53,348 bases of DNA from NCBI GenBank assembly GCA_010909165.1, contig MU008238.1, forward strand, positions 1 to 53,348, in the 5' to 3' direction. The position numbers and the translations under genes are program-made. This document shows positions 1-40,755 of the stretch, piece by piece (position 1 is the first letter of the stretch; each line of letters starts with the position of its first letter). This DNA is from Anthoceros angustus. Its lineage: Eukaryota > Plantae > Anthocerotophyta. A model generated the notes under the pieces. That model did no database searches. It saw only the letters and a list, made by a program, of their open reading frames with translations, and had not been told where the DNA came from.

Positions 1-1720
1 GCATTTTAAAAGTTCAAGTTATTCATTGCTGCTTTTATTACGAATGGCATCCAGAATGAGAGCAACGCGATGAAATGGTCGACATCCAAGAAGGTAATGA
101 TCATTTCGCCACACGTAAATCCATTTTCCGTTGACTCATGGTAAATGACTGCTTTCCGTAAAGTGACGACAATAGTAAAGACCCAACAAACCTTAACGCG
201 ATCAAACAACAATGTTCCCACCCATGGGGATCCGTGGATATGATGACAGTGAAGTTCAAATCCTCTCATTGAGATACGAAAGATAGTTGAGAAAGGTAAT
301 ACATTTCAATAAACTAAATTGAATCCCCGTGAACATTTCTAACTCGATATCTTTGATACAAGACTACTGAGCACACTATGTTCACATCAATGGACAAAAG
401 GACTTGCAGCCCTTTGCCAGTGCCCGCCTAACTGGAAAAAATTAAAAGGTAAAGACTTGGTTCTCGCAACTTTCGTAGGATCGCATAACGATCAGATCTC
501 AAACTCACTTTAGTTGTATATGGTTACAGGATATTAAGAAGAATCTCTCAACAACAGCTCAATTAGAGTTGGAAACAATGACTGGGTCCGAGGTTTAATG
601 GACAATGATCTCAATTCGATTTTGGAGGTAATCAACTAACACTAGGTCTCATGTGTATTTATTTACAGTAATAAATACTAATTTCCTTGTTTACTGATAG
701 TGTCAACAAGTTGCTTTAAGGAAATTAAGGAGAAAATTGAAGCAATGGATTATTAAAAATCAACAACACTACCATCTTTCATCGTAATTGTCATGTATGT
801 TTGTAAATAATAATTAGTTTATTTGTAAGTATATAATGATAACATCGTTTTTTCAAAGGACAAAAGAGGAAAAAGAAGTCAAGATAATGCACCAACGTAT
901 GGACCATCGAAAGAATTTGCCGATTTTGGAAAATGGATGGATAACTTTCAGTATCCACAAGTCTTCCAAGATTTTAAAAGTAGATATGTTCCCATTTGGG
1001 AACATAGCCTCAAAGATCCACCGCAGCCGATCTGCAATGAAGATGGGTCGACAGCAACCCTAGAACAGTACATGGAGATCCAAAAAAGTAAGTGTTATCG
1101 GTTTATATTATTCTTAGTATAGTTTACTGAATCAGTTTATGTAGTACTAATGAAATTTGAGTTTTGGTAATGCGTAAATATGCCAGCCATTGAAAATAAG
1201 GAGTCGAAACCACAGACTTGTTGACTCGATGGAAGATCCAGAAACTACAAAAACATTCAAAAGGTAAGTTCGTAATAATTTATTTATGTAAACAAGGAAA
1301 ATTGATATTCGTATTTTCAAATATGTAAATTTTAACGTTGATACCTCTTGCGTAACGTCCAATCACATTTCCGTAGTGGGAAATCTTCACAGCCATTGCC
1401 TCACATTAGTGAGAAAGGTATTTACCGAGCAAGATCTTCTTCGACTTGAGATGGAGGTAAAATATTAACCGATTTTTGTTTGTAGTTATCAAGAATCAAA
1501 AGGAGTTGTTTGCACTATTTGAGGTTAGTACATCATATTTCTGATGGTGAAATTGAATATGTACGATACCTAACATTTACCATTGCCCGTAAATATTCCT
1601 GCTTTTAAATTTTGAAATGATTAACTTTCTTCGGACCGTATAATGAACAAAGAAAGAAGTATTATTCTCAAGACAGCAGATCCGAAATCGCCGGTATACC
1701 CCTTCAACGCCAGAAGAAGT
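1..1720. other. AT-rich segment with short GT-AG intron-like gaps and unidentified + strand coding fragments
   Basis: Visibly more AT-rich than the rest of the window. Donor-like sites (gtaagt ~1086 and ~1264, gtaaaa ~1458) flank peptide-like pieces such as FADFGKWMDNFQYPQVFQDFKSRYVPIWEH and HCLTLVRKVFTEQDLLRLEME. No family recognised with confidence. Confidence 0.25.
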
Positions 1721-1997
1721 TAGAAAGGATAAATCAAAACCGAAAGAAACAAACAAAGCGTGAAAGTGAAAACTCGGCGAAGTGAAACGAAAGAGAGAGA
1801 AAAAAGACTTTTAAAGTGGTTGCACAAGGCATTTAAAGATGCAAGAGACTCCCGCCACCGCCCCAGTCGAGTGAGGCGCGGCTCGCCCCGCACTCGCCGC
1901 CCCTTACGCCTGTAACGAACGCCGGGCGACGCCCAGAACTCGCCTAACGGCCTCGACTGCTTCGCCGACGCCTCGAGTCTGCTCCCTAACACATAAT

Positions 1998-2876
1998 CTA
2001 AGGCACCCCAGCTCTTCCAAACAAAAATTCCCACTTTGCAAAAACCATGCCGAATAACGATGCATGCGGACGCAAACGTAAGTGCTTTTGAGCACTCACC
2101 GCCACATTACATGCCGCAATGCTCTTGAGCGAGCATTCCTCCCGAGATCTCTGCACTATGTATATAACTCCGCGGTGACCGATCGGGGAGCTGATATCGA
2201 ATTTTTGTTTTCCGAGGGCACTCATGAAAGACATCGACTTTCCTTGCGATTTCGAGGAACAAAAAAGGTCGCAAAATCCTTGGGCCGGATAGCTTTGACG
2301 CCAAGACGGCGGATTTCCTGTGCTGGTCATGCACGGCCCTCATTTCTAGGAGGTCCACCAACTTCCCAACAACCCCGTCAAGGCTATAGCCATGTACCCA
2401 AAGCCTCGAGATTTCTTGCATTGACCGAGGAGTCCTTTCTTCTTTACAAGCCACGACATAGCAGAGCCACATACGCCTCTTCACAACTCCCTTTTCTCAA
2501 GACCCTCGCCTTCTTGTAAGGAACTTGCCAATACCGTGTTGTGCACAATTCTCATTCTTTCGCGAGCTCGAAATCCTATCAAAGGCGTATATCAGTCGTT
2601 GCCATGAGTGGGAACCCGCATCGTGTTCCGCAGGATGCAACCCATTTTCCTTTGCTCAGAGTGGATGCAAGTGGTTAGGCCAGCATGGTCGAGCAAGTCA
2701 TCCGTGTAATGAGGACGCCCCACACGCCCTTCTCCTCGTGCTCGTGTCATTATCGAACTTCCTATATTCCAAGGTTCTCCGACACGACGCTCTTCTAACA
2801 CTAGACCGCACTGCAAATGCGCTCTGCACTGCTGTCCTCATAAATCTGCCTTTATCTTGCACTCTAGACATTTCAC
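1998..2876 (-). CDS. TFIIB: TFIIB-like general transcription factor, copy 1 (frameshifts probably read errors)
   Basis: Consensus across copies gives a Zn ribbon (CLEC...ECGLVLEERRVGETLEYRKFDND; plant TFIIB [20 protein letters not shown]), RVG...DDLLDHAGLTTCI, cyclin repeat 1 (AAAMYVACKEERTPRSMQEI; plant AACLYIACRQEDKPRT) and C-terminus SLKSIADACNVAVSTLKSTYRILRPHASVIVPAWFCK (plant ...LYPHLSKIIPAWYAK). Start codon not resolved. Confidence 0.85.
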
Positions 2877-3072
2877 TCCATATTCTACCGTCCCCGAGAT
2901 AATTAAAAAGTGGAATGTGTAGCCTTGAAATCGTTAACCCACGAGGGCTTTGGACAATGAGTGACTACACAATGATTGTTTTTCAAACAAGAAAGGATTC
3001 CATGGACCTTGAACCTTGACACCTTACGAGGGGCTTGTCCAATGTTTATGAATATATGTAAGTCGATCCCTC

Positions 3073-3333
3073 ATTTATATACCCAAGTTTTCCTTGGCCC
3101 TTGGGAATCTTACGTGGAATTTTGCATCCGAAACCCCTAATTACTATGGGCCAAGGAACAATCATCCTTGGATTTCATATCCCTTTTTTCCCTTAAATTC
3201 GCCCCACTTCCTTCGAGGTTGATTCCGTCCTTGGACTTTGGCCTCACAAATTTTTCCACAAAGTTCTTCTTTCTCGAACGCCACAAGAGTCCGCTAGCCT
3301 ACTTGCGCCGGACGCCGGAGTCTCGCCCCATTG
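3073..3333 (-). promoter_or_regulatory. Candidate TATA (TATATAAAT, 3073-3081) and upstream CCAAT (~3330) of the TFIIB unit; present in each full unit
   Basis: Motifs seen ~200 and ~450 bp upstream of the coding region on the - strand; function inferred only. Confidence 0.3.
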
Positions 3334-4429
3334 GCGCACTCTTGACACCCGGCCAAGATGCACGGAGTCCGTCCCACCCGACGATCGAGCCTCCCACTCC
3401 CCAATGCGACGTTCTCCACGGTTTAGGGTTATCGGGCCTACCACTCCCGAGTGCCCTTTCGGCCCTCCCGTGAGACTTCTCACCGTGAGTGCACGATGGC
3501 ACCGTCGGCAATCCCGACTCAGAATCGGTGAAGCTTGAGAAACCGTTTTAATTTTTGAAAGTGTTTCGTAGAAAGGGCCTATGTAAATTAGCCTACTTGT
3601 ACCAAATATCAAAGGCTATCGCATAAGCTATGTTGAGCTTGAAATGACAACTTGCATGCAAGAGAAGGAAATCAAGTCAACCAAGAACAACCTTTAGACT
3701 AAACCACATCCTTGTAGAGGCGGTGAAAACCAAGCGTGGGATGAAAACAATCACTACTATTCAAGTTTTGAAAAGGGTGGAGACCCCATTAAAAGCGTTG
3801 AGCGCTTTTTAGAGGACTTAACTTTCTCCTCAAGGAGAAGCTCTTTTGCCCACCAAAATTTTCAAACCTCCTAGGAGCAAAGATTTGCATAGTACTAAAT
3901 TGCAATCAAGAATGTAGGTCGCTAGAATGAAGGTGAGATAGTCTAAAATCTTATGTGAAACGAGTCATGTCCATGCACACGATGTTTGATTTAACGAAGC
4001 AAAAATCTTGTCACTAAAGGACGTGGACGAAGGTCTTTTTCCAATCCATGAAGTCCATGCAAACCTTTAACTTTGCATGGTCGGAGTGTGCATGAGTGTT
4101 GGGAATGCGTATGCGACTGGAATGCGGCGCATGTATGGATGGGCGCTGGTCGGATGCATAGGATTCAAACATTGACGTTAATGGAGGAGTCTCGTCACGG
4201 CATTTATGTCGACTATGTGCGACGCGATACCCTCACATCATTCTTGGCACCCGGGACAAACATTTGACCCCTTGCTTCAAAGAAGCATAACAAATTTGGT
4301 CATATAATGCACATACTATTGATACATTTAATTTTACGTAGTGAGAAAAAGTCACCGACCATGTCGCATGCTAGTATGTGAGCCTCAAGCACACTGAGCT
4401 ATTTGATTGAAGGCAAGTTCACAGATAAT

Positions 4430-5321
4430 CTAAGGCTCAATTCCCGAGCTCTTCCAAACAAAAATTCCCACTTTGCAAAACCATGCCGCACTATAACGGA
4501 TGCATGCGGACGCCGGGTAAGTGCTCTTGAGCGTACTCACCGCCACATTACATGCGCCGCAATGCTCTTGAGCGAGCCGCACGTTCCCCGAGATCTGCTG
4601 CACTATGTATATAACTCCGGTGACCAATCGTGGGAGCTTTGATATCGAATTTTGTTTTCCGAGGGCACTCACAAAGACAGCCTCGCAGACTTTCCTTGAT
4701 TTCGAGCCCTGAACAAAAGCTGCAAAAATCCTTGGGCCGATATTTTGACGCCAAGACGGCGGATTTCCTCGTGCTCGTCATGCACCCTCATTTCTAGGAG
4801 GTCCACCAACTTCCCAACAACCCCCGGTCAAGGCTATAGTCAGTACCCAAAGCCTCGTAGATTTCTTGCATTGACCGAGGAGTCCTTTCTTCTTTACAAG
4901 CCACGACATAGCAGCAGCCACACACGCCTCTTCACAACTCCCTTTTCTCAAGACCTCGCCTTCTTGTACAAGGAACTTGACACCGCGTGTTGTGCACAAT
5001 TCTCATTCTTTCGCGAGCTCAAATCCTATCAAAGGCGTATATCAGTCATGAGTGGGAACCCGTGCATTCGTGTTCCGCAGTTGTGGATGCAACCCATTTT
5101 TCCTTTGCTCAGAGTGATGCAAGTGGTTAGGCCAGCATGGTCGAAAAGTCATCCGTACGTGGACGTCCCCACACGCCTCCTTCCTCGTGCTGTCATTATC
5201 GAACTTCCTATATTCCAAGGTTTCGCCGACACGACGCTCTTCTAACACTAGACCGCACTGCAAATGCCGCTCTGCCGCTGTCCTCATAAATTGCCTTTAT
5301 CTTGCACTCTAGACATTTCAC
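4430..5321 (-). CDS. TFIIB: TFIIB-like gene, copy 2
   Basis: ORF pieces QCGLVLEERRVGETLEYRKFDND, RKGSCEEACVAAAM and AWFCKVGIFVWKSSGIEP-stop at 4430. Confidence 0.85.
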
Positions 5322-6892
5322 TCCATATTCTCTACCGTCCCGAGATAATTAAAAAGTGGAATGTGTAGCCTTGAAATCGTTAACCCACGAGGGCTTTGGA
5401 CAATGAGTGACTAAGCACAATGATTGTTTTCAAACAAAGAAAGGATTCCATGGACCTTGAACCTTGACACCTTACGAGGGGCTTGTCCAATGTTTATGAA
5501 TATATGTAAGTCGATCCTCATTTATATCCAAGTTTTCCTTGGCCCTTGGGAATCTTACGTGAATTTTGCATCCCAAACCCCTAATTACCATGGGCCAAGG
5601 AACAATCATCCTTGATTTCGTCATCCCCTTTTTTCCCCAAATTCGCCCCACTTCCTTCGGAGGTTGATTCCGTCCTTGACTTTGGCCTCACAAATTTTTC
5701 CACAAAGTTCTTCTTTCTCGTAACGGACGCCAAGAGTCCGCTAGCTCACTTCGCGCGGAGTCCGCTGCCCTATTGGCGCACTCCGCACACCCAAGAAGGC
5801 CAAGATGCACGGAGTCCGCCTACCCGCACGATCGAGCCTCCCACTCCCCAATGCGACGCCTCTCGCCCACTGCTTAGGGTTATCGGGCCTACCACTCCCG
5901 AGGCGCCCTTTCTCGGCCCTCCCGTGAGACTTCTCACCGGTGAGTGCATCGATGGCCGTCGTGCAATCCCGACCTCAGAATCGGTGAAGCTTGAGAAACC
6001 GCTTTAATTTTTGAAAGTGTTTCGAGAAAGGGCCTATGTAAATTAGCCTACTTGTACTAAATATCAAAGGCTATCGCATCAAGCTATGTTGGAGCTTGAA
6101 ATGACAACTTGCATGCAAGAGAAGGAAAACTCAAGTCAACCAAGAACAACCTTTAGACTAAACCACATCCTTGTAGAGGCAGTGAAAACCAAGCGTGGAT
6201 GAAAACAATCACTACTATTCAAGTTTTGAAAAGGGTGGAGACCCCATTAAAAGCGTTTTGAGCGTTTTTAGAGGACTTAACTTTCTCAAGGAGAAGCTCT
6301 TTTGCCCACCAAAATTTTCAAACCTCCTAGGAGCAAAGATTTGCATAGTACTAAATTGCAATCAAGAATGTAGGTCGCTAGAATGAAGGTGGCGTATAGT
6401 CTAAAATCTTATGTGAAACGAGTCATGTCCATGCACACGATGTTTGATTTAACGTAAGCAAAAATCTTGTCACTAAAGGACGGACGACGGTCTTTTTCCA
6501 ATCCATGAAGTCCATCGGCAAACCTTTAACTTTGCATGGTCGGGAGTGTGCATGAGTGTAAGTGTTGGGAATGCGTGTTGACGATGCTGACCGTGGAATG
6601 CGATGCTGGATGTATGGATGGGCGATGCATAGGATTCAAACATTGATGTAATGGAGGGAGTCTCGGTCACAGCTATGTCGACTATGTGCGACGCGACATA
6701 CTCCTCACATCATTCTTGGCACCCGGGACAAACATTTGACCCCTTGCCAAGCAACAATTTGGCCATAATGCACACACACCTATTGATACATTTAATTTTA
6801 CGTAGTGAGAAAGTCACGACCATGTCGCATGCTAGTATGTGAGCTCAAGCACATGAGCTATTTGATTGAAGGCAAGTTCACAACAAGATAAT

Positions 6893-7784
6893 CTAAGGCT
6901 CAATTCTCGAGCTCTTCCAAACAAAATTCCCACTTTGCAAAACCATGCCGCATTTATAACGGATGCATGCGGACGCAAAATCTGGTAAGTGCTCTTGAGC
7001 GCATTTCACCGCCACATTACATGCGGCAATGCTCTTGAGCGAGCTGCACGGTTCCCTCGAGATCTTACCATGTATATAACTCGCTGACCGATCGTGGGGA
7101 GCTTGGATATCGAATTTTTGTTTTCCGAGGCACTCACTTGAAAGACAGCTCTGACTTTCCTTGCGATTTCGAGCGAACAAAAAAGGTCGCAAAATCCTTG
7201 GGCGGATAGCTTTGGACGCCGGCATGATTTCCCTCGCGGCTCGTCATGCACGGCCCTCATTTCTAGGAGGTCCACCAACTTCCCAACAACCCCTGGTCAA
7301 GGCTATGCAGTAGTACCAAAGCCTCGTAGATTTCTTGCATTGACCGAGGAGTCCTTTCTTCTTTACAAGCCACGTACATAGCAGACATACGCCTCTTCAC
7401 AACTCCTTTTCTCAAGACCCTCGCCTTCTTGTACAAGGAACTTGCCAATACTGTTGTGCACAATTCTCATTCTTTCTCGAGCTCAAATCCTATCAAAGGC
7501 GATATCAGTCGCTGGTCATGAGTGGGAACCCATTCGTGTTCCGCAGCGGTGGATGCAACCCATTTTCCTTTGCGTAGTGCGGATGCAAGTGGTTAGCCAG
7601 CATGGTCGAGCAAGTCATCCGTACGTAGGACGCCCCACACGCCTCCTTCCTCGTGCTTGTCATTATCGAACTTCCTATATTCCAAGGTTTCGCGACACGA
7701 CGCTCTTCTAACACTAGACCGCACTGCAATGCCGCCTGCACTGTCCTCATAAATCGCCTTTATCTTGCACTCTAGACATTTCAC
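6893..7784 (-). CDS. TFIIB: TFIIB-like gene, copy 3
   Basis: ORF pieces KCLECKIKAIYEDSAGG, ETLEYRKFDND, MYVACKEERTPRSMQEIYEAL and SLKSIAACNVAV. Confidence 0.85.
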
Positions 7785-9338
7785 TCCATATTCTCTGTCC
7801 CGAGATAATTAAAAAGTGGAATGTAGCCTTCAAATCGTTAACCCACGAGGGCTTTGGACAATGAGTGACTACACAATGATTGTTTTTCAAACAAAGAAAG
7901 GATTCCACAAAGGACCTTTGAACCTTGACACCTTACGAGGGCTTGTCCAATGTTTATGAATATATGTAAGTCGATCCCTCATTTATATACCCAAGTTTTC
8001 CTTGGCCCTTGGGAATCTTACGGAATTTTGCATCCCAACCCCTAATTACTATGGGCCAAGGAACAATCATCCTTGGATTTCGCTATCCCCTTTTTTTCCC
8101 CCTTAAATTCGCCCACTTCCTTCGAGGTTGATTCTAGTCCTTGGACTTTGGCCTCACAAATTTTTCCACAAAGTTCTTCTTTCTCGAGCCGGACGCCAAG
8201 AGTCCGCTTAGCCTACTGCGCCGGACGCCGGAGTCTCCGTCCTATTGGCGCACTCCCGACACCCGCAAGGCCAAGATGCATCGGAGTCCGGCCTACCAAG
8301 ACGATCGAGCCTCCCACTCCCCAATGCGACGTTCTCCCCACTTAGGGTTATCGGCCTACCACTCCCGAGGCGCCCTTTCTCTCCGTGAGACTTCTCACCG
8401 GTGAGTGCATCGATGGCACCGGTCGGCAATCCCGACCAGAATCGTGAAGCTTGAGAAACCGTTTTAATTTTTGAAAGTGTTTCGAGAAAGGGCCTATGTA
8501 AATTAGCCTACTTGTAAAATATCAAAGGCTATATCGCAAGCTATGTTGGAGCTTGAAATGACAACTTGTATGCGAGAAGGAAAACTCAAGTCAACCAAGA
8601 ACAACCTTTAGACTAAACCACATCCTTGTAGAGGCGTGAAAACCAAGCGTGGATGAAACAATCACTACTATTCAAGTTTTGAAAGGTGGAGACCCCATTA
8701 AAAGCGTTGAGCGTTTTTAGAGGACTTAACTTTCTCAAGGAGAAGCTCTTTGCCCACCAAAATTTTCAAACCTCCTAGGAGCAAAGATTTGCATAGTACT
8801 AAATTGCAATCAAGAATGTAGGTCGCTAGAATGAAGGTGGCGATAGTCTAAAATCTTATGTGAAACGAGTCATGTCCATGCACACGATGTTTGATTTAAC
8901 GTAAGCAAAATCTTGTCACTAAAGGACGGACGACGAAGGTCTTTTTCCAATCCATGAAGTCCATCCGGCAAACCTTTAACTTTGCATGGTCGGGAGTGTG
9001 AGTGTAAGTGTTGGGAATGCGTGTTGACGGCTGACCGTGGAATGCGGCGCCGATGTATGGATGGGCGGTCGGATGCATAGGATTCAAACATTGACAGCTT
9101 AATGGAGGGAGTCCGGTCACGCAGCCTATGTCGACTATGTGCGACGACATACTCCTCACATCATTCTTGGCACCCGGGACAAACATTTGACCCCTTGCTT
9201 AAAGCATAACAAATTTGGCCATAATGCATATGACACATTGAATTTTACGTAGTGAGAAAAGTCACGACCATGTCGCATGCTAGTATGTGAGCCTCACACA
9301 CCTGAGCTATTTGATTGAAGGCAAGTTCACAAGATAAT

Positions 9339-10173
9339 CTAAGGCTCAATTCCCGAGCTCTTCCAAACAAAAATTCCCACTTTGCAAAACCATGCCGACT
9401 ATAACGGATGCATGCGGACGAAAATCGGTAAGTGCTCTTGGCGTACTCACCGCCACATTACATGCGTCGGCAATGCTCTTGAGCGAGTGCACTGCCCCGA
9501 GATCCACACCATGTATATAACTGGACCGATCGTGGGAGCTTCTGATATCGAATTTTTGTTTTCCGAGGGCACTCACCTTGAAAGACAGACTTTCCTTGCA
9601 TTTCGAGCCTGAACAAACAAGGTCGCAAAATCCTTGGGGGGATAGTTGACGCCAAGACGGCGGATTTCCTGGTCATGCGCCCCTCATTTCTAGGAGGTCC
9701 ACCAACTTCCCAACAACCCCTGGTCAAGGCTATAGCTGAGTACCCAAAGCCTCGTAGATTGCATTGACCGAGGAGTCCTTTCTTCTTTACAAGCCACTAC
9801 ATAGCAGCCACATCTTCACAACTCCCTTTCTCAAGACCTCGCCTTCTTGTACAAGGAACTTGCCAGCACAATTCTCATTCTTCGAGCTCAAATCCTATCA
9901 AAGGCGTACATCGTCTGTCATGAGTGGGAACCCGTGCATTCGTGTTCCGCAGGTGGATGCAACCCATTTTCCTTTGCGCTCAGTGCGGAAAAAGCATGGT
10001 CGAGCAAGTCATCCGGCACGACGCCCCACACGCCCTTCTCCTCGTGCGTCATCGAACTTCCTATATTCCAAGGTTTCACTGATACGCTCTTCTAACACTA
10101 GACCGCACTCGCCAAATGCTCGCCTGCACTGTCCTCATAAATCTGCCTTTATCTTGCACTCTAGACATTTCAC
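9339..10173 (-). CDS. TFIIB: TFIIB-like gene, copy 4
   Basis: ORF piece SLKSIADACNVAVST...RPHASVIV; remainder aligns with the other copies. Confidence 0.8.
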
Positions 10174-11741
10174 TCCATATTCTCTGTCTGAGATAATTAA
10201 AAAGTGGAATGTGTAGCCTTCAAATCGTTAACCCACTTTGGACAATGAGTGACTAAGCACAATGATTGTTTTTCAAACAAGAAAGGATTCCATGTGACCT
10301 TGAACCTTGACACCTTACGAGGGCTTGTCCAATGTTTATGAATATATGTAAGTCGCATCCCTCATTTATATACCCAAGTTTTCCTTGGCCTTGGGAATCT
10401 TACGTGAATTTTGCATCCCGAAACCCCTAATTACTATGGGCCAAGGAACAATCATCCTTGGATTTCGCCATCCCTTTTTTTCCCCTTAAATTCGCCCCAC
10501 TTCCTTCGAGGTTGATTCCGCCCTTGGACTTTGGCCTCACAAATTTTTCCACAAAGTTCTTCTTTCGTAACGCCGGACGCCAAGAGTCCGCTAGCCTATG
10601 CGCCGGACGGAGTCCGTCTATCCCACTCCCCAGACACCCGCAAGGCAAGATGCACGGAGTCCGTCGGCCTCCCGACGATCGAGCCTCCCACTCCCCAATG
10701 CGACGTCTCGCCCACGGTTTAGGGTTATCGGGCCTACCACTCCCGAGTGCGCCCTTTCGGCCCTCCCGTGAGACTTCTCACCTGAGTGCATCGATGGCAC
10801 TGCCGTGCAATCCCGACCTCAGAATCGTGAAGCTTGAGAAACCGCTTTTAATTTTGAAAGTGTTTCAGAGAAAGGGCCTATGTAAATTAGCCTACTTGTA
10901 CCAAATATCAAAGGTTATCGCTCAAGCTATGTTGGAGCTTGAAATGACAACTTGCATGCAGAGAAGGAAAATCAAGTCAACCAAGAACAACCTTTAGACT
11001 AAACCACATCCTTGTAGAGGGTGAAAACCAAGCGTGGGATGAAAACAATCACTACTATTCAAGTTTTGAAAAGGGTGGAGACCCCATTAAAAGCGTTGAG
11101 CGTTTTTAGAGGACTTAACTTTCTCAAGGAGAAGCTCTTTTGCCCACCAAAATTTTCAAACCTCCTAGGAGCAAAGATTTGCATAGTACTAAATTGCAAT
11201 CAAGAATGTAGGTCGCTAGAATGAAGGTGGCGATAGTCTAAAATCTTATGTGAAACGAGTCATGTCCATGCACACGATGTTTGATTTAACGTAAGCAAAA
11301 ATCTTGTCACTAAAGGACGTGGACGACGGTCTTTTTCCAATCCATGAAGTCCATCGGGCAAACCTTTAACTTGCATGGTCGGGAGTGTGCATGAGTGTAA
11401 GTGTTGGGAATGCGTGTTGACGATGCCGACCGTGGAATGCGATGCGGATGTATGGATGGGCGCGGTCGGATGCATAGGATTCAAACATTGAGCTAATGGA
11501 GGGAGTCTCGGTCACGGCAGCTATGTCGACTATGTGCGACGCGACATACTCCTCACATCATTCTTGGCACCCGGGACAAACATTTGACCCCTTGCTTCAA
11601 AGCAAGCATAACAAATTTGTCATAATGCACACGTCTATTGATACAATTTTACGAGTGAGAAAAAGTCACCACCATGTCATGCTAGTATGTGAGCTGAAGC
11701 ACACATGAGCTATTTGATTGAAGGCAAGTTCACAAGATAAT

Positions 11742-12544
11742 CTAAGGCTCAATTCGAGCTCTTCCAAACAAAAATTCTACTTTGCAAAACCATGCCGGTA
11801 CTATAACGGATGCATGCGGACGCAACCGGTAAGTGCTCTTGAGTACTCACCGCCACATTACATGCGCCGGCAATGCTCTGAGCGAGCCGCACGTTCCCTC
11901 GAGATCTTACGACCATGTATATAACTCCCAGGACCGATGTGGGGAGCTTGGATATCGAATTTTTGTTTTCCGAGGGCACTCACGCTTGAAAGACTCGACT
12001 TTCCTTGCGCATTTCGAGCCCCGGAACAAAACAAAGGTCTTGCAAAATCCTTGGGCGGATAGCTTTGACGCCAAGACGGCGGATTTCCTGGCTGCTCGTC
12101 ATGCACGGCCCTCATTTCTAGGAGGTCCACCAACTTCCCAACAACCCCCGGTCAAGGCTATAGTCAGTACCCAAAGCCTCAGATTTCTTGCATTGACCGA
12201 GGAGTCCTTTCTTTACAAGCCACGTACATAGCAGCAGCCACATACGCCTCTTCACAACTCCCTTTTCTCAAGACCTCGCCTTCTTGTACAAGGAACTTGC
12301 CAATACCGCGTGTTGTGCACAATTCTCATTCTTCTGTGAGCTCGAAATCCTATCAAAGGCGGATATGTCGTGCCGTCATGAGTGGGAACCCGTGCATTCG
12401 TTCGCGGTGTGGATGCAACCCATTTTCCTTTTGCGCTGTAGTGCGGATGCAAGTGGTTAAACTCATGGTCGAGCTCGCCGTATGCGTGGGGCGTCCCGCT
12501 CCTTCTCTCGGCTCTGTCATTATCGAACTTCATATTTTCCAAGG
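11742..12544 (-). pseudogene. TFIIB: TFIIB-like gene, copy 5, Zn-ribbon end removed at the LTR junction
   Basis: Same unit, but it ends in the ETLEYRKF-coding region immediately before tgtggaatggg at 12545. Confidence 0.75.
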
Positions 12545-15500
12545 TGTGGAATGGGTTTTTGCATCCGAAGAGCCTTGGCCACATTACCCTCTATGTCGTT
12601 ATAGTCCTAGGATTGATCCCAAGGAATGGTGTTGTGTCAAGTGTTACGATCTATGGTTCTAGACCTACCACAACCGACGCCATACCAACCACCCACTCTA
12701 CGGAACCGACCATCGTGGAGGACTCCACCGCCGCTGGGGTTCCACATCAGAGTGGCGTTGCTCGCCACCGCAGCGGTTGACTCAACCAGGCGGGCCACCG
12801 GTAGCGCCGCGTCTTGTCGTGACCACCAGCCGTCACCCGGCTTCCGGACGGGGTCTCAGTCGGTCTTCCCCACCACACACATAGACTCACATCTACTCTA
12901 ATTCACTCCTAGGGGTCGTGCTCGAACTTCCGGAATTAGGCACTCGATCGGGGAATGCGCGACGGCTCGCGGTGTCGACCCCTCTTGGTCTCACTCCTCG
13001 CTTTTCCCCTCCCTCTTTCTATTACTCGCGTTTCCTCAACGCAACCACAATTCCTTACCACGGCATACTCACCCTCTTCTTGAGAACCTCTCCACATGTG
13101 CACAGTCTCTCTCCCTTCCGGCCACAGACCTCACCCGGGCCACGGACCCCTCCTCATGGAATTAACACACTTCGATGGGCGGCTTGTTGGAAGAGGACGG
13201 GGAGATGATCGTGCCGGCGGTTCACCTTGCCGATCTCACCCCGACTTTCCGCAGCAACCCTTGCCCCTTCTCGCGCATGTTGGGCGCCTCACCATTCAGC
13301 AGGCGTGGAGCTTGGCCACTCCGCTCTCGACCATCGAGATCTTCCGGTCTTCTTGTGTGAAGGCGGTCTGAGCTCCGTTTGATCTTGACGGGCGTCTCCA
13401 ATCAACCCCACGAAGGTTCGATACGGAAGTTCACACACGAAATACATCTTTGAGAGACACCCAAAGGTCTCTTATACATCAGTGGTCCAACACGACTCAC
13501 TTCTCTTTAGGGTCTAAAATTGTAGCTCCTACCACGGCGCCTTACCAATCTAAGCCACAACGCTCTGGTGATGGAACTCCCTATCCCTACTTTGAAAAAC
13601 CCGGTCCTAGGCTATCGCGACTCTAAAATCAGCGCCCCGCGATGCCGCCGCCCACGGCCCATGGGGACCCCTCTCGCTCTTGGCCTCGCCTGCGATCCGG
13701 CGATTTTCCCCACAACCTCCACCTCACTCTCCTTTTGAGTTTCCCTCGCGCCTTCCAGCGGGCGTTGCCTTTGTGACCTCTATGTCCATTGTCCGCTCCT
13801 CTCATTTGGACAACCATCGTGTGCTCCTCCTCCATGCTCGGCTGCGCCTCGCTCATCTCTTCCGGCACCACTTGCGGAGGATAGCGCCCGCTCCTACTCG
13901 AGAAGGAACCAGCGTAGCGCTTTGTGGCAGTCAAGATGTCTGACCGGTGGTTTACGCCTCCCATCCCAACAACCACATACACGTTTAGGTGAGCACCCGC
14001 TCACCATGCGGCGAGCAGGGACATGAGCATCCTCATCGGACGCCGTAACTGTCGCCCTTGATCTGAGGTCCTTACCCTCTCCTCCGTGGACAATCACTGG
14101 GCGGCTGCTGTTGATTCTCGGGAGATCATCCCTCCATCTGCGACACTCACAGGTGACTTCCCCACCTCGGTTCCCGTTCCACGGCGGTGGGTGGTTTAGC
14201 CACCGTGGTGGTTGTTCCCAGTGGTTGCTTGGCTCTGCGGTGGTGCTCGGCCTTCTTGGTTTGGCCACCTCTCTCTTGACTCGGCTAACCGTCTCTTTCC
14301 GCTTGTACCTCTCGGACTTCTTGAATTTCTCCAAGGCGCCATCGCTTCCACCTCCTGGACTCGCGAGACCTCATCTTGAAGCTCTTCAATTGTATCGCCC
14401 CTTGACTGATTTACTAAGGCCTCCTTGAGTGGACATGGCATCGCTGCTCACATGCCCTTGGCCTTGCACTCCGTCTGCGCTCCTCGGCCGCCTTGCTCTC
14501 GAGGCTTTCCAACTTCTCCTTGAGCAACTTCTCACATGGCCTTGCACTCGGCCGGTGAGCCATGGGCTTGATCGAGGAGATCCGCTGCGTCGTGCCATGG
14601 CGAAGTCAAACCACGCAAATCCCCAAATTGGGCTGTCCCTTGCCCATCCGCCTCCACAACAATTCTCGTGCGGTGTCTCTATCCCCACCTCGGACGGTTC
14701 GGTGAAATGTCGCCAAAATGTCCGGGAACTCGTTTCTTGCTCTGAAGTTAACCCCTCTCCTCTAGGGGTTGATGCCCTTGCCTCTTCCCCATTCTCCCCT
14801 AGATTCATCCCACACAGGAGGGCAACACCATTTCCCTTTATTTTCTCCTCCTTTACCCAGCGTTCTGCTGCCAGTCTTCAGTGACCACAGGTGTGGCTGT
14901 GGGTTCCTCCTCTGCTGTTGTCCTCCCTTTTCGACCCCCCGTTCGTGCGCCGCTTCTTGCCTTGAAACTTCCCACCCTCTTAGAACCTTCGAGGGCGCAT
15001 TCCCAAGCTGGAATCCTTGCCGAATCCTCCTTAAATTCCTCCTCTTCTACCTTGGGTTCCCGACGGCTTCCAACCATGCAGGACCTGACTTCAACTCCGT
15101 TAAACACGGAATGTAAATACATGAATCGAGAAAAGGTGAAATCAAGGAGGCCGAGGAAGAGAGAGTAAGTCGCCTTCTCCACAGGCTCTTTCGAAAATCA
15201 TCCTTCCCCAATCAATTTGTGTACCCTTGACCACCTCGTGAAGAAAAACCAAGAAGTGATCCGCCATATGATCCAGCCTTCCGGCTCAGAGGAAACACAA
15301 AATCCATTTGGCTAATCCCACCACCGCAGACACGAGTTGGCGAGTCACCCATTGTTCACTCTCACTTCCCCAGCTCATGAGCCTCAAGGTCTTTCACTGG
15401 GGTCAATCACCAAGCTCCCATCTTCCGATGCTTCGCCCATACATCGCTCGAAAGAGGGCCAAATCCCGCCTGCGGCCTTTCCTCGGCCACCCTCTTGCGA

Positions 15501-16752: not shown

Positions 16753-17079
16753 CGGTCTCAGACGTCCCTGCTTTCGCCACCGTGGTGGAACTAGCCACCA
16801 CCCCACTTGACTACACAACTGGCATATTGTGAGCATCCCTAGCATATATAGACACCTTTTATTCTAAAATTCCCAATACCCAAGGACTCTATTTCTACCC
16901 CACCTCCGGGTCAAACCTAAGGGTCGAAAAATTATTATTATCTCCAAGGGCCAAGGACCATTCCGTATAAAAGACCGACTCATGATTCTCAAAGCACTGC
17001 TATTCTAACACATCCAAAACAAAAAAATCGTTCACCCGACACTTGGGAGGCGGGGTTAGTGCACATGTGGTCTTCCACA

Positions 17080-17095
17080 TACTCCCTTCTCATTT
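17080..17095 (-). promoter_or_regulatory. Polypurine tract AAATGAGAAGGGAGTA (also at 23588, 27244 and 37326)
   Basis: Purine run ~18 bp after the pol stop codon and directly before TGTGGAAGACC. Confidence 0.75.
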
Positions 17096-17112
17096 GTTGG
17101 CCCCTCGCCAAC

Positions 17113-20100
17113 TTATTGGTATATTTTGACCCGCCAACCGCTGACGCGCAAGGGGGTGAGCCACTAAGGAGTTGAATTGATCCGTTGTCGAAAACTTCAA
17201 ACTCAAGGGGCCCCATCCATCCGAGATGTAATTTACGGAAAATGCATGTATCGGTTATCATATAGTAAAGCGGATCCCTGTGAACAACGTATTCTTGACG
17301 CTTCAATCTCTTGTCGTGCCACTCCTTCCTCCTTTTGGACATCCCGCATAACTTGGAGGGCTTGTTCTCCTCCGTGTTTTAAACCCACCAACCTTTCCAA
17401 TCGACTTTCTCCACCGGCATTCGACTTGGTTCTGTATTCTGGTGGGAACTTGAATTCTATTGGCATGACGAAATGCCCGTAAGATAATACGGGGTTTTGC
17501 TGCGTTGTCACTTTTCCATGGTCCGACGCCTGCGTTTTGAATGCTTTCATATCCGATACATAATGATGTGAGTTTGGTTAGGATCTTGCACAACAAGCCA
17601 TTTGCCTTTTCCGCCCCCATTGGCTTTTGGGTTATAAGGCGTGGACTTCTGAGCGACGTTGAAGTGGTGGTCATGTTGGAGATTACGATTGACGAAATGT
17701 GTTCCTCACAGCTCCGGGCCCATATCGGTGATGATTTGCTCAGAATGCACGACGCCGAATCTACGGCGCGTGCTTCTACCATCCGCGCGAATCATGGCCA
17801 CCGGGATGTATTGGTTTTGGCGAGCCTTGGTTTTAATGGATAGGACCGAAAAATCGATTCCCCATTTCTCGAATGGTGCTGCAAGTATGGGGACAAGGGG
17901 CCATTGGGTTGTTGTTGGCTTGCCGACCCTTTGGCAAGCGCCAGCCGCTTCACGAACTCCTTGGCATCCTTGTACATTGTAGGCCACCAATAGCCGCCTC
18001 AAAATTTTCACGCATGTGACATGCGGCATAATGACCTCCGCCTCTTCGTGTAAAGAGCTCGGGACTCACACCGCTTGATGCGCACATAACCGCTCCCCCG
18101 TCCGGATGACTCGGTATAAATTCATGTTGCCGCCGTGAATGGTCCGGAGTAGTGGACAAACACTGAATCTGTCTTGGAAAGATGGAGGAATTTGGCCGTG
18201 CCAAGATAATCGTATATCTCCGATATGTTGGTCTTCCGAAGCCACCCTCCCTTCTCAATCGATCCTCCTCCGAACTGGCTTCACTCGGTTTGCAACCCTG
18301 CAGAAAGTGTCTCATCGGAAAGTCGTCTTCTGGTCCTTTCCACCTTCCTGCTTTCAATCGAGATATGAAGTCGGCATTGATATGCTTCCTACCCTCTCTC
18401 GTTTCCACTGTGAAGGTAAACTCAAGCGAAGATCCGTGCTATGCGTCCGAAAGGTCGTTTATTCACAAGGTGTTTCAAGGCAAAGTGGTCAACATGGAAC
18501 ACAAATTCATACGAGAGGAGGTAGTGTCAATTTCGACCGAGTAAACCATTCCGGCTTGGCCTCCGTGGTGGTGTTCCGTCTGTTAGTTGTCTCCCAAAGA
18601 TAGTAGATCGGAAAATCCTTCTTCTTCTCATCCCGCTGGCTAAGGACCGATCCAATTGCAAATGCTGAAACATCAACGAAAACGTGGAACTTCTTACTCC
18701 GGTCCTTTAGCGTGAGTGAGCTGGGTGGTGAAGTCCGAATGCTTCCTCCCGTTGCGTCGTCCATTCCCACTCCTGATCCTTCCTTAACAAGCTCGTTAGT
18801 GGGGCAGCCCGCTTGGCGAAATTTGGAAGCAAGCGTCTATAATACCCGACCATCCTGTGAACCCGGAGTTCCTTTAGCGTTGTTGGTGCTCTAAGTGTGG
18901 CGATGACCTTTACCTTGTCCGGATCTACTTCTATACCTCGGCTTGAAATTCGATGCCCCAACAGAATTCCTTCTGACATGCCGAAGTAGTACTTTTCTGG
19001 ATGCAGGCATAATTGCGTGGCTCGACAGCGTTCCAGGCACTTCCGGAGGTGCGACAGATGGTCCTTGATGCACGCGAAGTCGTCCAGGAAAACTTCCATA
19101 AAGTCGCGGAGGAAGTCCTTGAAAATTTTGACGATGGCTCGCATGAAGGACCCAGGTGCTCCCGTCAACCCAAATGCGCTAAGCATATATGTCCCCGCCG
19201 GTTGTAAAAGCGGTCGAGGCCAATCGCTCTCCCTAAGGTGCAAATTGATTATACCCAGTAGTCTAGGAATGAATACGCCATTCCTGCACACTGATCCGGA
19301 TATTATCGATGAAGGGTAAGGAAAGTGATCCTTCTTGGTGACTTATTCAACCTTCTCTCCCGACAAACTCGGATTTTGCTGGCGCCTCTAGGTACTACCA
19401 CTATTGGAGCCACCCATTCGGTATTGACTATAGGATAGATCACGGCCTTGAGGTACATCTCCAACCGATCCTTTACCTTGAGGGAGTACTTGGATTTAAC
19501 TTGTTGTGGAATCCTTCTGGATTGCTCACGGTTCCAGTCAATCCTATGCTCGCCCCATTCTTTGGGGATCCCTTCATGTCATACCTCAAGGCGAAAACAT
19601 CAGGAATTGCAGCTTCATTCCTTCCTCCAACGCCGCATCCATTGTTACGGAGAATTTGAGCACCTTCACGGAAGAACCTCAACGTCCTTGACTTCATCAC
19701 TGCACTCACTCGCCCTCTGGTGCGGTGCTAACCCCGAATCCTTCCGGCTCCCGTTCCTCTTCTCTCATGCCCCATTCCCTAAACAAATCCTCCGACGTGA
19801 ACGCGCCTCCTCCTTTCTCCACTGCTTCAATCTCGCCGGACCCCTTCCGGAGCATTCACTACCCCGTAACACCGGGTTAATTGTATATGGGATATCTCTG
19901 CGTAGTCCGCTCCTCATCGGACCATGAGATGTGTGCGAACGGAACCTATCTTCCTCTCCCATCTCCCGACGTGTCCTCTGCCGAGGTGTACCTTCGCTTT
20001 GCTTGGAGTTTCACCGCATACATGTCCTTCCACGATAGGCACATCCTTCCCTCCTTGGTCTTGGGATCCCATTCCAACGGTTTAAAACCGACTTCCTTCC

Positions 20101-21480
20101 GCCCCACTTGAGTGCATGCGTACATCCATGTTCGCCAATTAGGACGTCGACAGCGATTTTCCGGATGACTACATAATCCATCAAGTAGGGATGGTTCCAA
20201 TGGTCGTTAGCACCCGCCGGTTCCCCACCGCACCATTACGGACATGTCGGCTAGCCTCAAAACCTTGGTAGTATGTTCAATATCCAAGCCCAATTTCCTA
20301 GCCGTGTCTTCTCATATAATATTTACACCGACCCGTGTCGAGAGGCACTCCTTTGATGACACATCCCGAAATTTCCACTGAGTTGGTGGGCCTTGATCCA
20401 CCATGGATACCAAGTTCACATGAGCGGGTATAGGAACATTGCGCCTCTTTTGGGTTGCGCCTCTTTTAACGCCTCCCGAGTTGCCTATACCGCGGATTGT
20501 CTGAGGAGTTGTCCGAATGTGATCATGAAATGTTGGTCCATGATGGCCTCGGCGAGATTGAAAGAAGCGGTGGCCAGCCTTCCGCCATTTGGTTGGTTGT
20601 GGGTTCGTCATGACTTGGGGTACGGTGGCCCTTCCGTGGGGTGGTGGACTCGGGTGGTGGAAATCGACACCCCGCCTTTTCCCCGTAGCCTCCCGTTCTT
20701 CTTGTATCATATCCATGACTTCACCGACGTGGAAACCCTAACTCGTTCGGTAACTTCTCCGAAATCGAGGGTTCCACCCCTCGACGGCTTCACAGCCCTT
20801 CATTCGCTTTCCTCACTGGAACACTCAATGTCTCACTCACTTTTTGCACATATGGTCCATCCGCCAAGTCACCAGGACTTGTTTTTTCGTCTTGGCCAAC
20901 GTTCACGGTGTTGGTATTTCCGCCAGTGGTGGCGACACTCTCCTCATCCGATCCCGTGGTATCCGCCTCCTTTCTTCTTTTTCCCCCACGCCGCCTCTCT
21001 TTTGCTTTTGTGCTCCTTGTTCTAACGACCATGGCGGAGGCTTCCCCATAATAATCGCCTCACCGCCTAATCCTCCAAGCTCCTCGTGGTTCCAATCTCA
21101 TCCTCCCATACCGCCATAAGTGCATCCTCAACATGCATGGCGACACCGGACTTGGGTTTGGGAACTCCCGGGTGGTGCGCGATCCTCACTGTTTTCGGGG
21201 CTTTGGCGAGCACACTTCCGCCAAATGCCCGCCGCTTGCAATCTTGACATAGTTTATCAAAATCTCCATTGCCTTGACGAGTTGGATAAGGGCAGGCATA
21301 GTGTCCAAGGTTGCGCTTAGCACAAGACGGTGCCCATTGATTGTTACCCCGCCCTTATGAACGCCTACCCGTGGAATTACGAGGCTGGTACATGGTTTTG
21401 GGTACACTTGGGTTGATCAACCTCCCGGATCCGTATGTATCTTCCACCGGACCTCTTCCTCCTCTTCCTCATATCCCAAA
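17113..21480 (-). CDS. Gag-Pol of element E copy 1 (Zn knuckle, protease, RT, RNase H, integrase); many apparent frameshifts
   Basis: Zn knuckle CQDCKRxGHLAEVC ~21210-21250; protease LDTxxGVNII ~20330; RT FGLTGAPGSFMR...FLDDF ~19080; RNase H FHVFVDVSAFAIGSVLSQ; integrase GHYAACH...WPTMYKDAKEFV, PFEKWGIDF; C-terminal WMGP...NGSIQL. Confidence 0.9.
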
Positions 21481-21500: not shown

Positions 21501-23587
21501 TGTGGAATGGGTTTTGCATCCAAGACGCAAGAGGCCACATTTACCCTCTATGTAGTCCTAGGATTCGATCCAAGGAATGGTTTTGTGTCAAGATGTTCCA
21601 AAACCATGGATTCTAGTCCTCCCACAATCGGGCCTCACCACCATAATCAATCATCGTGTCCTAAGCCCACGACCATGGTAGTTGACCACTGCAGGGTTCG
21701 CCACCGTGTGGTGGATTCCGCCACCGTGGTGGATTCGCCACCGCGGTGGCTGGTTCAGCCACCGTGGGACCCACCTGGCCGGCGGTACGCGTCGCGATCG
21801 ACTATTTGGCGCCCGGTTCCCCCCGCCACGCCTGCTAAGGGTCCATGCTGCAGCCACATGTACACCAAGTCACACTCATGTGGATTCACACCTGAGCTCA
21901 CCGGTGGATGCGCACACGCACGCCGGCACCCACCCGCCGCGATTTCCTCGACCCCACAATTTATTCCCAACCTTCCTGCTCCGCATTTTCCGACTCGCGC
22001 CACCACTTCCTAGACTCCTCTTCACACAACGACTCACTCACCCCTTCTTCTAGGACCTCATACACCACCGCACAAGATGTTCCCACAGATCCTCCTCTCG
22101 TGCCACAGACTCCCCTCTTGGGCCACACAGACCTCCTCACCTTCACAGGGGGCCACAGACCTCCTTGGGCCACACAGACCTCCTCCTTGGGCCACATGCA
22201 CTCTCCTTCACACAGACCAGCCACAGACCTCCCTTGGGCCACAACCCCTTGGGATTAGACACAACTGTTAGACATGGGTTGGGAAAGGAAAACAATTGGT
22301 TGGCTCCACAGCGATTCGACACCCGCGATCTCACCCCGGTCCCCATGGAATTTCCCTCTGGCATGCATTGAGCACCCTTCACCACTAGTCACCCAGACGC
22401 GGAGCTTGGTCACTCACTCGACCATCCAGGATCTCCCGGCCCTCTTGTGACGAGAGGATGACAATAATCAGCCCATCATCGATTGGATGTCTCCAACCAA
22501 CCACGCACACAAATTCGACACACGGGAGCTCACACCGAAATTGTCTGCTAAGAGAGACACTCAAGGGTCTCTTATACATCCGGCAGCGTACCATAGCTCA
22601 CTTTCCCAAAGGTGTCTAAAGATGGCTAACCTACCTCGTGTTTAAAGATGGCTAACTTACCACAAGCGCCTACCAATGTATCTACAAATTCACAAGCTTC
22701 CTAGCACCTTATCCTCTAATCCAAGTGAAAGCCTGACCTATGATGCCGCCCTCTAAAATCGCCTCCTCACTGTGGCCTTAGCCCCGCGCCCATGGGTGTT
22801 CCCCGCCTCCTACCACGCCCGATCCGAAAGATCCTCCTTAATATCTCCACCTCACTCCGCTATCCGAGGTCCCTTCACTCCTCCTAGGAGGCGTCCGTCC
22901 CGCCCTGCAAGACGCTTCCTCGCTCCTCATCGGACAGCCAAAGCATGCTCTCCATCCATGCTCTAGCCTCCGCCTTGCTCATTTCCTCGAGCACAACCGT
23001 GAAGGGTATGCCCGGCTCCTGTGGACAATCCCGGGCCGTGGCCGCTCGAACTGAGGGAGTTGCATCCTCCTCAGGCCTCGACGGTGGCTTCCCCACCTTG
23101 GGTCCTTCTTCCATGACGATGGCCGGCTCCACCACCGTGGTGCGCCTGCTGACGGTGGTGGCCCCCACTGGTTGCTTCATGCTGGTGGTGTTGCTCTACC
23201 CTTCTTCGCTTTGCTGCCTCTCTCTTGACCCTGGCCCTAGCCTCACCTCTCCCCGCTTATACCTCTCAGCTTCACGAACTTCTCCAGGTGCTGCCTCCAC
23301 TTGTTCCGGGCCCCTGTTGTCGAATGAAGGATCCCCACCTTATATAGACAATTTTATTCCTAAAATCCCAAGGTCCAAGGACCTTCTAGCTGGCCTGATA
23401 TTCACAGTTCGAGGCCCAAGGACTAATTATTTGTAAAAGTAATATTGTCATGGGCCAAGGACCATTTTAGTATAAAAGGCCTTGCCTCGGACATTTCCTA
23501 AGCACTCCATCACACAAAACATAAGAAAAACAAAAAACATTCAAACCAATAGTCCAGGGAGGGTTAGTGTACATGTGGTCTTCCACA
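21501..23587 (-). repeat. LTR of family A (~2.09 kb)
   Basis: TGTGGAA...TTCCACA termini, adjacent PPT, TATATAAG on the - strand near 23340. Confidence 0.85.
22100..22253. repeat. Degenerate ~20-bp tandem repeats (ttgggccacacagacctcc) inside family A LTRs; second cluster at ~25770-25925
   Basis: Several copies visible in both LTRs. Confidence 0.8.
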
Positions 23588-23621
23588 TACTCCCTTCTCA
23601 TTTGTTGGCGTCCTCGCCAAC

Positions 23622-25088
23622 TTATTGATAATACTTTTCAACTCGCCAACCAACTCACGGTTGGCAAAGGCGACCATTCAAATCGCGGATGGAACCATTG
23701 TGGAAAACCTCCAAGACCTCGAACGGACCCATCCACCGTCGTCCGCCATAACCGTTGTTACCGTCGTCCCATTCGATATAACTTGGTCTTGTGTCTTCTG
23801 ACGGTCGCGAGTAATGGAGACGCTTCTTGTACCTTAGAGAGGTTTTGAGAATTTGGCGGTGCAGATACTCACAAATTTCGAGGCCGTTTGTGAAGCTCTT
23901 TCTCCTTCTCATTCGAGGCCATCTCGCCTCCCTTCCCCTCTTGAATTGGGTGCAGCCTCGCCTCCACTGTTGTTCCACTTTCTTGGTTGCCGCCTCGCCT
24001 CCCTCCTTGCTTGCTCCGCATCTTTTTTTGCATACAACGCCTCTTGTTTCCTCGCCACTCTTTGTTCCCAGCTTCTTCCTTCCACTTCACCCCTTGATTT
24101 CTTCTTTTTCCTCCGGCCTCATCCCACTGAATCTTCCTCCAAGTGTCACTGCTTTCTTCCTCCATGGAATCCTCTGGGAATCTTGAGGAGCTTTCCTCTC
24201 TGAGGAACTTTCTCCCGAGGACGATGAGGAATCCTTTCTTTTCCCGTTTGGACTTCTTCCCGTTCTTCTTAGCCTTCTTCATCTCCTGCGAGTTAGATTC
24301 CTCGTAATTTAGCGCCGCCTTGATAGCCTTGCCCAAATTCTCCGCTTGCCACCCACGTGTCTCCCCATCTTAGAACCGGGCCTTTAGCGAACCACCGTAT
24401 TGCTCCTCGAACAATGAGGACCACTACGATCACGTGGTGTGAAACCTCTCAACATACGCTTGCAAGGTTTCCTTCCTCTCTTGTAACCTCTCAAGCTTGG
24501 ACAACACGTAGCCCTCCATGTCAATCCCCTAAACCTCTCATGAAGGCATTCTTCAATTCTTCAAAGGTGGTTGGGGGTGACTTGAGGTACTCGCGTATCC
24601 ACTTTGGGACCGCCCGAAGAACTCCATAGAACAGTTGAATGCTGGCGGCATCGGTTTGCAAATGTCACCGCTCAAAGCGCTCAACAAATTCGGGATCCTC
24701 ATACCCCTTTCCCTCCCCATAAGGTAAGGTTGCTTGGTGGTGACACCACCCGCAGGTGGACATGACTGCCATCTTTGGTGAATCGTGGTTGATTCTGACG
24801 GTCCATGCGTTGATTGACAAAATCCGCACACACCGAAGAGAGGTCAAGACAAGTTTGGACCAAGGTTCCTCGGTGGTACCTCGTCCAAGACCGGAGATTG
24901 GGGATCTTGCTCCAACAAGATCGGACAATCCGGCCGATTCCTTACTCCCTTCCCTTCCGCAAGTCGTCCTCCAATTGGGTCCTCCTCAACTCCCGATCCG
25001 CAACCCTTTTCAACCTTTCCACTTGCTGCGCCCGCTTGAGGCTTCTCCCGACTTGACTCAATCCTCCGACTCAACTCGTGGCATCCAT
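23622..25088 (-). CDS. Gag joined directly to the integrase C-terminal tail (PR, RT, RNase H and IN core absent)
   Basis: Gag-like YEDPxEFVERFER...PTTFEELKNAF...ENLGKAIKAALNYEES and a Ser/Lys-rich tract, then WMGPFEVLEVFHNGSI...WRVEKYYQ-stop. Confidence 0.7.
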
Positions 25089-40737: not shown

Positions 40738-40755
40738 CCTCGTCACATGACGAGG

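Follow-up and report, generated by a model that had tools for sequence, protein, structure and literature searches.

A short, transposon-truncated tandem array of TFIIB-like units in Anthoceros angustus, probably part of a gene-bearing macrosatellite

In a 53,348-nt stretch of Anthoceros angustus DNA (contig MU008238.1 of assembly GCA_010909165.1, positions 1 to 53,348 of the forward strand; hereafter the window), we analyzed a head-to-tail array of a 2.44-kb unit, each copy of which carries a TFIIB-like reading on the minus strand. The locus is probably a short piece of a gene-bearing macrosatellite that was truncated by a transposon; its copies would be near-identical in truth and are probably silent. 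Sequence comparisons, weak match by match but consistent with one another, lead us to accept the TFIIB ancestry of the N-terminal module (Zn ribbon and B-reader) and of the first cyclin repeat. The differences between the copies bear the signature of base-calling noise in repeated, probably methylated DNA and not that of mutation.

Layout and borders of the array

The array occupies positions 1993-12545. Self-BLAST and the analysis of repeat families resolved it into four full units and an 809-nt fifth, that is 4.3 units:

1993-4424: array unit 1
4425-6887: array unit 2
6888-9333: array unit 3
9334-11736: array unit 4
11737-12545: array unit 5, partial, 809 nt

An earlier note on this DNA had proposed a tandem array of at least five copies; the array of 2.4-kb units stands, the five complete copies do not. 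When the first 16 kb of the window were compared with themselves, shifted self-matches of 8.4, 5.9, 3.4 and 0.8 kb were obtained that start at 1989-1993, end at 12447-12545 and show 84-88% identity. The start-to-start spacing of the ungapped repeat families in the array is 2382-2472 nt. Tandem Repeats Finder is blind to such an array because its longest period was 500. Outside 1993-12545, no further copy of the unit was found in the window, either by DNA comparison or by protein comparison with the TFIIB-like reading described below.

The left border (1993) lies 4 nt beyond the stop codon of the first TFIIB-like copy and adjoins unique DNA; since the array begins there, copy 1 is without its 3' flank. 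This left flank (1-1992) is AT-rich (38% GC) and has no similarity to the remaining window. The right border (12545) was located by BLAST of the right flank and from the border sequences. It coincides with the first base of a repeat resembling a long terminal repeat (LTR), which starts with TGTGGAATGGG:

12545-12676, plus strand: start of the LTR-like repeat that terminates the array

The terminus of this repeat recurs at 21501 and 25184, where 2.9-kb repeats begin. As the LTR terminus falls exactly at 12545, an LTR-type element appears to have cut copy 5 inside the gene, thereby removing its Zn ribbon. The window also contains two direct repeat pairs (16776-20473 with 37015-40738, 3.7-3.9 kb; 21501-24393 with 25184-28033, 2.9 kb) that are LTR-like and show ~87% identity.

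The remaining ~1.3 kb of the unit gave no family match and no RNA gene in Rfam and tRNA scans of the array and in Pfam searches with the open reading frames (ORFs) of this spacer; with the ORFs of the spacer and of the right flank, Pfam returned nothing meaningful.

The TFIIB-like reading and its ancestry

In each unit, a TFIIB-like reading is colinear with a minus-strand stretch of ~0.9 kb. Its ~296 codons extend over ~890 nt, which leaves no room for an intron and agrees with the intron-free region of this size noted earlier in every 2.4-kb unit. The reading was obtained by aligning the five copies and translating the consensus in three frames, the path being stitched across copies. The motifs follow one another in the order CLEC, ~16 residues, (H/E)-x-x-C-GLVLEE, EYRKFDND, RVGRP, DDLLDHAGLTT, two helical blocks and a PAWF end. 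CLEC was found in four copies, (T)LEYRKFDND in copies 1-4, RVGRP in three copies and PAWF in copy 5. The copies were delimited as follows, frame shifts being counted against the stitched path:

1996-2885, minus strand: TFIIB-like copy 1; 15 frame shifts (frameshift-aware alignment, border sequence)
4433-5330, minus strand: TFIIB-like copy 2; 16 frame shifts and 3 stops; contains the Zn-ribbon-matching piece 5183-5272
6896-7793, minus strand: TFIIB-like copy 3; 20 frame shifts and 2 stops; contains the cyclin-repeat-matching piece 7317-7382
9342-10182, minus strand: TFIIB-like copy 4; 18 frame shifts and 1 stop; contains the Zn-ribbon-matching piece 10021-10110
11745-12545, minus strand: TFIIB-like copy 5; 5'-truncated, Zn ribbon lost; contains the best cyclin-repeat-matching piece, 12182-12274

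No single copy holds the reading intact, the frameshift-aware alignment requiring 15-20 frame shifts per copy. An intact ORF of ~290 aa per unit, as envisaged in the earlier note, is open nowhere in the assembly, and the longest stop-free stretch on the minus strand of the array is 129 aa. At every junction where the stitched path changes frame, one copy or more reads through without a break; at two of these junctions this holds only for an alternative wording (2320-2457 in copy 1 and 11778-11840 in copy 5). The data would thus be compatible with intact underlying genes, except for the missing in-frame start described below.

To examine the ancestry of the reading, in-frame runs trimmed from different copies were compared with Pfam, NCBIfam and the sequences of the PDB, the family having been named beforehand. 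Whole stop-free pieces of copy 1 had no match in Pfam or the PDB. The trimmed pieces gave the following matches:

5183-5272 (copy 2), minus strand: Pfam PF08271 (TFIIB zinc-binding), profile positions 24-43 of 43, E 0.0036
10021-10110 (copy 4), minus strand: Pfam PF08271, profile positions 24-43 of 43, E 0.0058
12182-12274 (copy 5), minus strand: Pfam PF00382 (TFIIB repeat), E 9.4e-4, 19.6 bits
7317-7382 (copy 3), minus strand: Pfam PF00382, E 0.0029
7266-7466 (copy 3), minus strand: Pfam PF00382, E 0.0053
Four pieces: NCBIfam NF001658 (full-length archaeal TFB, 312 positions) as sole match; ribbon/reader at 37-65, cyclin at 148-192; E 0.003-0.1
12182-12274 (copy 5): PDB sequences, 8 of 8 chains TFIIB or TFB core domain, E 0.05; human TFIIB 152-180
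5183-5272 (copy 2): PDB sequences, 4 of 4 chains TFIIB, E 0.4-1; human TFIIB 36-59, yeast Sua7 48-70

PF08271 was the only family matched by the two ribbon pieces (16.6-17.3 bits versus a cut-off of 29). On NF001658, the copy 2 piece 5183-5272 aligned at positions 37-60, and the cyclin segment 148-192 was matched with E 0.003 (copy 5 piece 12182-12274) and 0.023. The first cyclin-like repeat is therefore supported by PF00382, NF001658 and the PDB, each match lying under the curated cut-off. TFIIB ancestry was accepted because the family had been named in advance, the three libraries agree, the matching pieces come from four copies and their positions are colinear.

The individual elements of the reading fared differently. 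The earlier note had described a Zn ribbon of the form C-x2-C/C-x2-C. Its first pair (CLEC) was recovered in four copies and the second half of the ribbon matches PF08271; the second pair is not C-x2-C as read, and in no copy does the whole ribbon lie in one frame. At the second Zn-ligand pair (2781-2819, minus strand, in copy 1), HLQC is read in copies 1 and 2, ALQC in copy 3 and x-E-C in copy 4. The stretch just upstream of this pair is among the noisiest, and the residue there is uncertain. A B-reader changed to EYRKF with RVG kept had also been proposed: EYRKF is present in copies 1-4, the piece that carries the ribbon and reader matching human TFIIB 36-59 weakly, whereas RVGRP, seen in three copies, was recognized by eye alone, as was the LLDHAGLTT motif. 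The 47-aa linker piece had no match in Pfam, the PDB or NCBIfam. The PAW C-terminus, described as plant-type, gave no match or random matches only; PAWF was seen by eye in copy 5 and no tool supported this assignment. We take the second repeat and the C-terminus (VIY..., NVAVSTLKSTY, PAWF) to resemble plant TFIIB, as read by eye, and treat this resemblance as a lead only.

Plant TFIIB-related paralogues include TFIIB1/2, pBRP and BRF. TFIIB proper would fit the array better than BRF or pBRP, given the length of ~296 codons, the short end after the second repeat that has no long C-terminal extension, and PDB matches to TFIIB or TFB and none to Brf. The domain order is that of canonical TFIIB, namely Zn ribbon, B-reader, B-linker and two cyclin repeats, the second repeat of the array being recognized by eye. 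The array copies differ from canonical TFIIB in being very divergent (the two best stretches, of 24-29 residues, share ~41% of their positions with human TFIIB), in the EYRKF sequence of the B-reader, in the H/E-x2-C form of the second Zn pair, and in being intron-free and multi-copy.

Relatives of the reading were sought in several collections. A word search with the 129-aa piece, restricted to proteins of 71-226 aa, found none. Among 1.84 billion representatives the sole match was P0001, a repeat protein of 1063 aa whose tail looks like a transmembrane segment; it was rejected as a chance match owing to its repeated 'IEGYSLGGV' motif. The top match of the 129-aa piece in the ESM Atlas, replication factor C, was set aside as its score (0.84) is below the useful range. 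An exact look-up of eight ORFs of the window in a protein collection found none of them present, and scans of JGI metagenomes with exact 26-mers and a protein pattern found no relatives. A comparison with viral contigs, made as a test of giant-virus origin, likewise found no relatives; only close relatives were within its reach, and such an origin is not excluded by it.

Copy differences, promoter and start codon

The four full units were compared to characterize the differences between copies. All copy pairs are equally distant, at ~88% identity, and BLAST alignments of the array contain 366 gap openings versus 255 mismatches over 8373 columns. The 474 singleton differences are spread evenly (119, 99, 114 and 129 per copy). 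At 49 sites the substitutions split the units 2:2, and these sites are distributed 17/16/16 among the three possible groupings, giving no tree signal. The ratio of transitions to transversions among copies is near 1.2, and CpG is not depleted (observed/expected 0.93). The fraction of disagreeing columns is 0.44-0.57 at CG or CHG versus ~0.2 at a distance of at least 6 nt. Conversely, a clean neighbourhood surrounds 23 of 130 CG sites versus 403 of 690 A/T-A/T sites.

The same profile is found in two other repeat pairs of the window, both of transposon sequence: one pair has 166 mismatches and 168 gap openings at 86.6% identity, the other 140 and 132 at 86.8%. An ORF of 569 codons (45171-46880, plus strand) is unbroken; its product has a domain of the Xan_ur_permease family of nucleobase transporters (PF00860, E 9e-27) and no NCBIfam match. 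As the indel rate of the array would break this ORF, the noise is limited to repeated DNA. The same ORF is a long intron-free reading in a plant contig, and served as an internal control for the accuracy of the assembly outside repeats. Given this error profile, a broken frame in a repeat of the assembly should not be taken for a mutation.

A putative promoter element and a shared defect at the 5' end were mapped in the units:

3068-3081, minus strand: TATA box TATATAAATGAGGG of copy 1, with the first Cys codon 211 nt downstream (located by exact and fuzzy motif search; conserved repeat family)
7976-7989, minus strand: TATA box, same motif
10359-10372, minus strand: TATA box, same motif
5515-5530, minus strand: TATA box, same motif, blurred
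2871-2884 (copy 1), with the equivalent site in copies 2-4, minus strand: shared 5' defect, ATGGAGTGAAATGT

The distance from the TATA box to the first Cys codon is 205-211 nt and the element is present in each full unit. Alignment of the copies and a listing of ATG codons and frames showed that the sequence before the first Cys codon, ATGGAGTGAAATGT, is identical in copies 1-4 and contains no CG or CHG. The ATG in this sequence stands at the place expected for a TFIIB start, about four codons before the first Cys. Its frame is nevertheless shifted by one base against that of the Cys codon, and a TGA follows two codons on. Either one base was really lost and the loss became fixed in these units, or the start-codon problem reflects a systematic error such as the under-calling of a run of G. 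A possible splice acceptor just upstream may be a further explanation.

Origin of the array, rival explanations and known macrosatellites

Plant TFIIB genes contain introns. For the origin of the array, we infer methylation, silencing, retroposition (from intron loss alone) and the mode of amplification as follows. The 2.44-kb unit would have been formed by a TFIIB gene copy devoid of introns, a TATA-box promoter and a spacer of ~1.3 kb. Its head-to-tail multiplication would most likely be due to unequal crossing-over or to replication slippage between units. The copies are probably near-identical, and most of the 12% apparent divergence and of the 15-20 frame breaks per copy would be due to poor base-calling of DNA that is probably cytosine-methylated. 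At this locus the array would most likely be silent repeat DNA that yields no protein; this reading is based on the LTR element that flanks and cuts the array and on the four 5' ends, all of which are devoid of an in-frame start codon. The suggestion that the unit is a retrocopy with an acquired promoter holds in so far as the reading is TFIIB-derived and intron-free and is preceded by a conserved TATA box, but no poly(A) or A-rich tract was found 3' of the stop codon in the unit. Head-to-tail amplification, also put forward in the earlier note, is supported; the lack of tree structure among the copies and the undepleted CpG would fit either recent amplification or ongoing homogenization. In contrast, the proposal of a specialized or dosage-amplified factor was not borne out at this locus, as no frame is open, the four 5' ends have no in-frame ATG and copy 5 is cut by the LTR.

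Several observations weigh against this account of the locus. All family matches fall under the curated cut-offs (17-20 bits versus 23.6 for PF00382 and 29 for PF08271). Of the two cyclin repeats claimed at the outset, only the first was recovered: the second had no Pfam or NCBIfam match in any piece and chance matches only in the PDB (E ~1), in tests whose power is limited by in-frame runs of at most 45 aa. The noise also amounts to ~0.2 per column away from CG and CHG, and the GC dinucleotide, used as a control, is enriched as well (0.35); on account of these two results, cytosine methylation as the source of the noise is only suggestive. Finally, systematic error in base-calling could also account for the missing start, and the genes may then be intact.

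Intact genes are the core of one rival explanation, in which the array is a working family of TFIIB paralogues. Their B-reader would be altered (W to Y and T to K), they would act as a specialized or dosage-amplified initiation factor at a certain stage or in a certain tissue, and all breaks, the start-codon problem among them, would be sequencing errors. The TATA box at a fixed distance in each unit speaks for it, as do the assembly of the full reading solely from variants present in at least one copy, the undecayed CpG, and Zn-ribbon and cyclin signatures that are still recognizable in very divergent sequence, which points to past selection. The human TAF11-Like and DUX4 macrosatellites are, moreover, expressed in the germ line (PMC3018141; PMC5849414). 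We nevertheless consider working genes unlikely. The frame is interrupted in every copy; the four 5' ends share the ATG defect, which falls in an otherwise clean stretch devoid of CG and CHG, and none of them has another in-frame ATG back to the upstream stop. The locus is also cut by an LTR, and the 129-aa query found no related protein among 1.84 billion cluster representatives. A related idea, to which we give slightly less credit, is that of a functional TFIIB paralogue in which the loop that reads the start site has been rebuilt (EYRKF), and which is silenced by methylation and released only at one stage of the life cycle, in gametangia, zygote or spore.

Genuine decay, with real indels and substitutions accumulated independently in old copies, appears just as improbable as a working gene family. 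It would account for the breakage of all copies, the start-codon defect common to them and the inserted transposon. The pattern of differences is nevertheless not the expected one: indels outnumber substitutions, and the copies form a perfect star with equal branch lengths and no neighbour effect. A transition/transversion ratio of ~1.2 and undepleted CpG are unlike real decay of methylated DNA, and unrelated repeats of the window share the error profile. An artefact in which the assembler expanded or mis-joined one unit, or some other number of copies, would agree with a sequence quality resembling that of single reads. We judge it very improbable, since the array measures just 10.5 kb and is bounded within the contig by unique DNA to its left and the LTR terminus to its right, and each unit carries independent errors, as would be expected from a spanning long read.

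Macrosatellites with a gene in each unit are known mainly from mammals (DUX4, TAF11-Like, USP17, the last carried by RS447), and some of them act in the germ line or early embryo. The array shares with these the head-to-tail repetition of a kilobase-sized unit (2.44 kb, 4.3 times). Each of its full units has a TATA box and a TFIIB-like reading, but no ORF is open as assembled. The closest precedent for a basal-factor paralogue in a macrosatellite is the TAF11-Like array at human 5p15.1, whose 3.4-kb unit is present in 10-98 copies, with expression chiefly in testis and brain; each of its units holds a short ORF for a paralogue of TAF11, a subunit of the general transcription machinery (PMC3018141). 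Its ORFs are intact and conserved across primates, whereas those of the present array are broken as assembled, in a 2.44-kb unit derived from TFIIB. The human macrosatellite D4Z4 carries a DUX4 retrogene in each unit and is normally in repressed chromatin (PMC5849414). It resembles the array in its kilobase unit repeated head to tail and in the intron-free gene for a transcription protein in each unit (PMC5849414). It differs in that the ORF of DUX4 is intact and encodes a sequence-specific homeodomain factor known for its germline and embryonic role, while the array concerns a general RNA polymerase II initiation factor with no intact ORF, in a plant.

Full-text searches of the literature turned up no TFIIB array in a bryophyte or any other plant. 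TFIIB places RNA polymerase II at the start site, and a plant macrosatellite derived from this factor would add a new case. Should any unit prove intact and expressed, it could be tested whether a stage-specific TFIIB can re-tune start-site choice. A functional but silenced paralogue would be a plant counterpart of DUX4 and TAF11-Like, with a general RNA polymerase II initiation factor delivered from a macrosatellite. This small, LTR-truncated and noisy locus adds little on function; its value lies in the error profile, the precisely mapped border of the array and the shared start-codon problem. Elsewhere in the window, an ORF for a gag-type aspartic protease is located at 32838-33578 on the minus strand.

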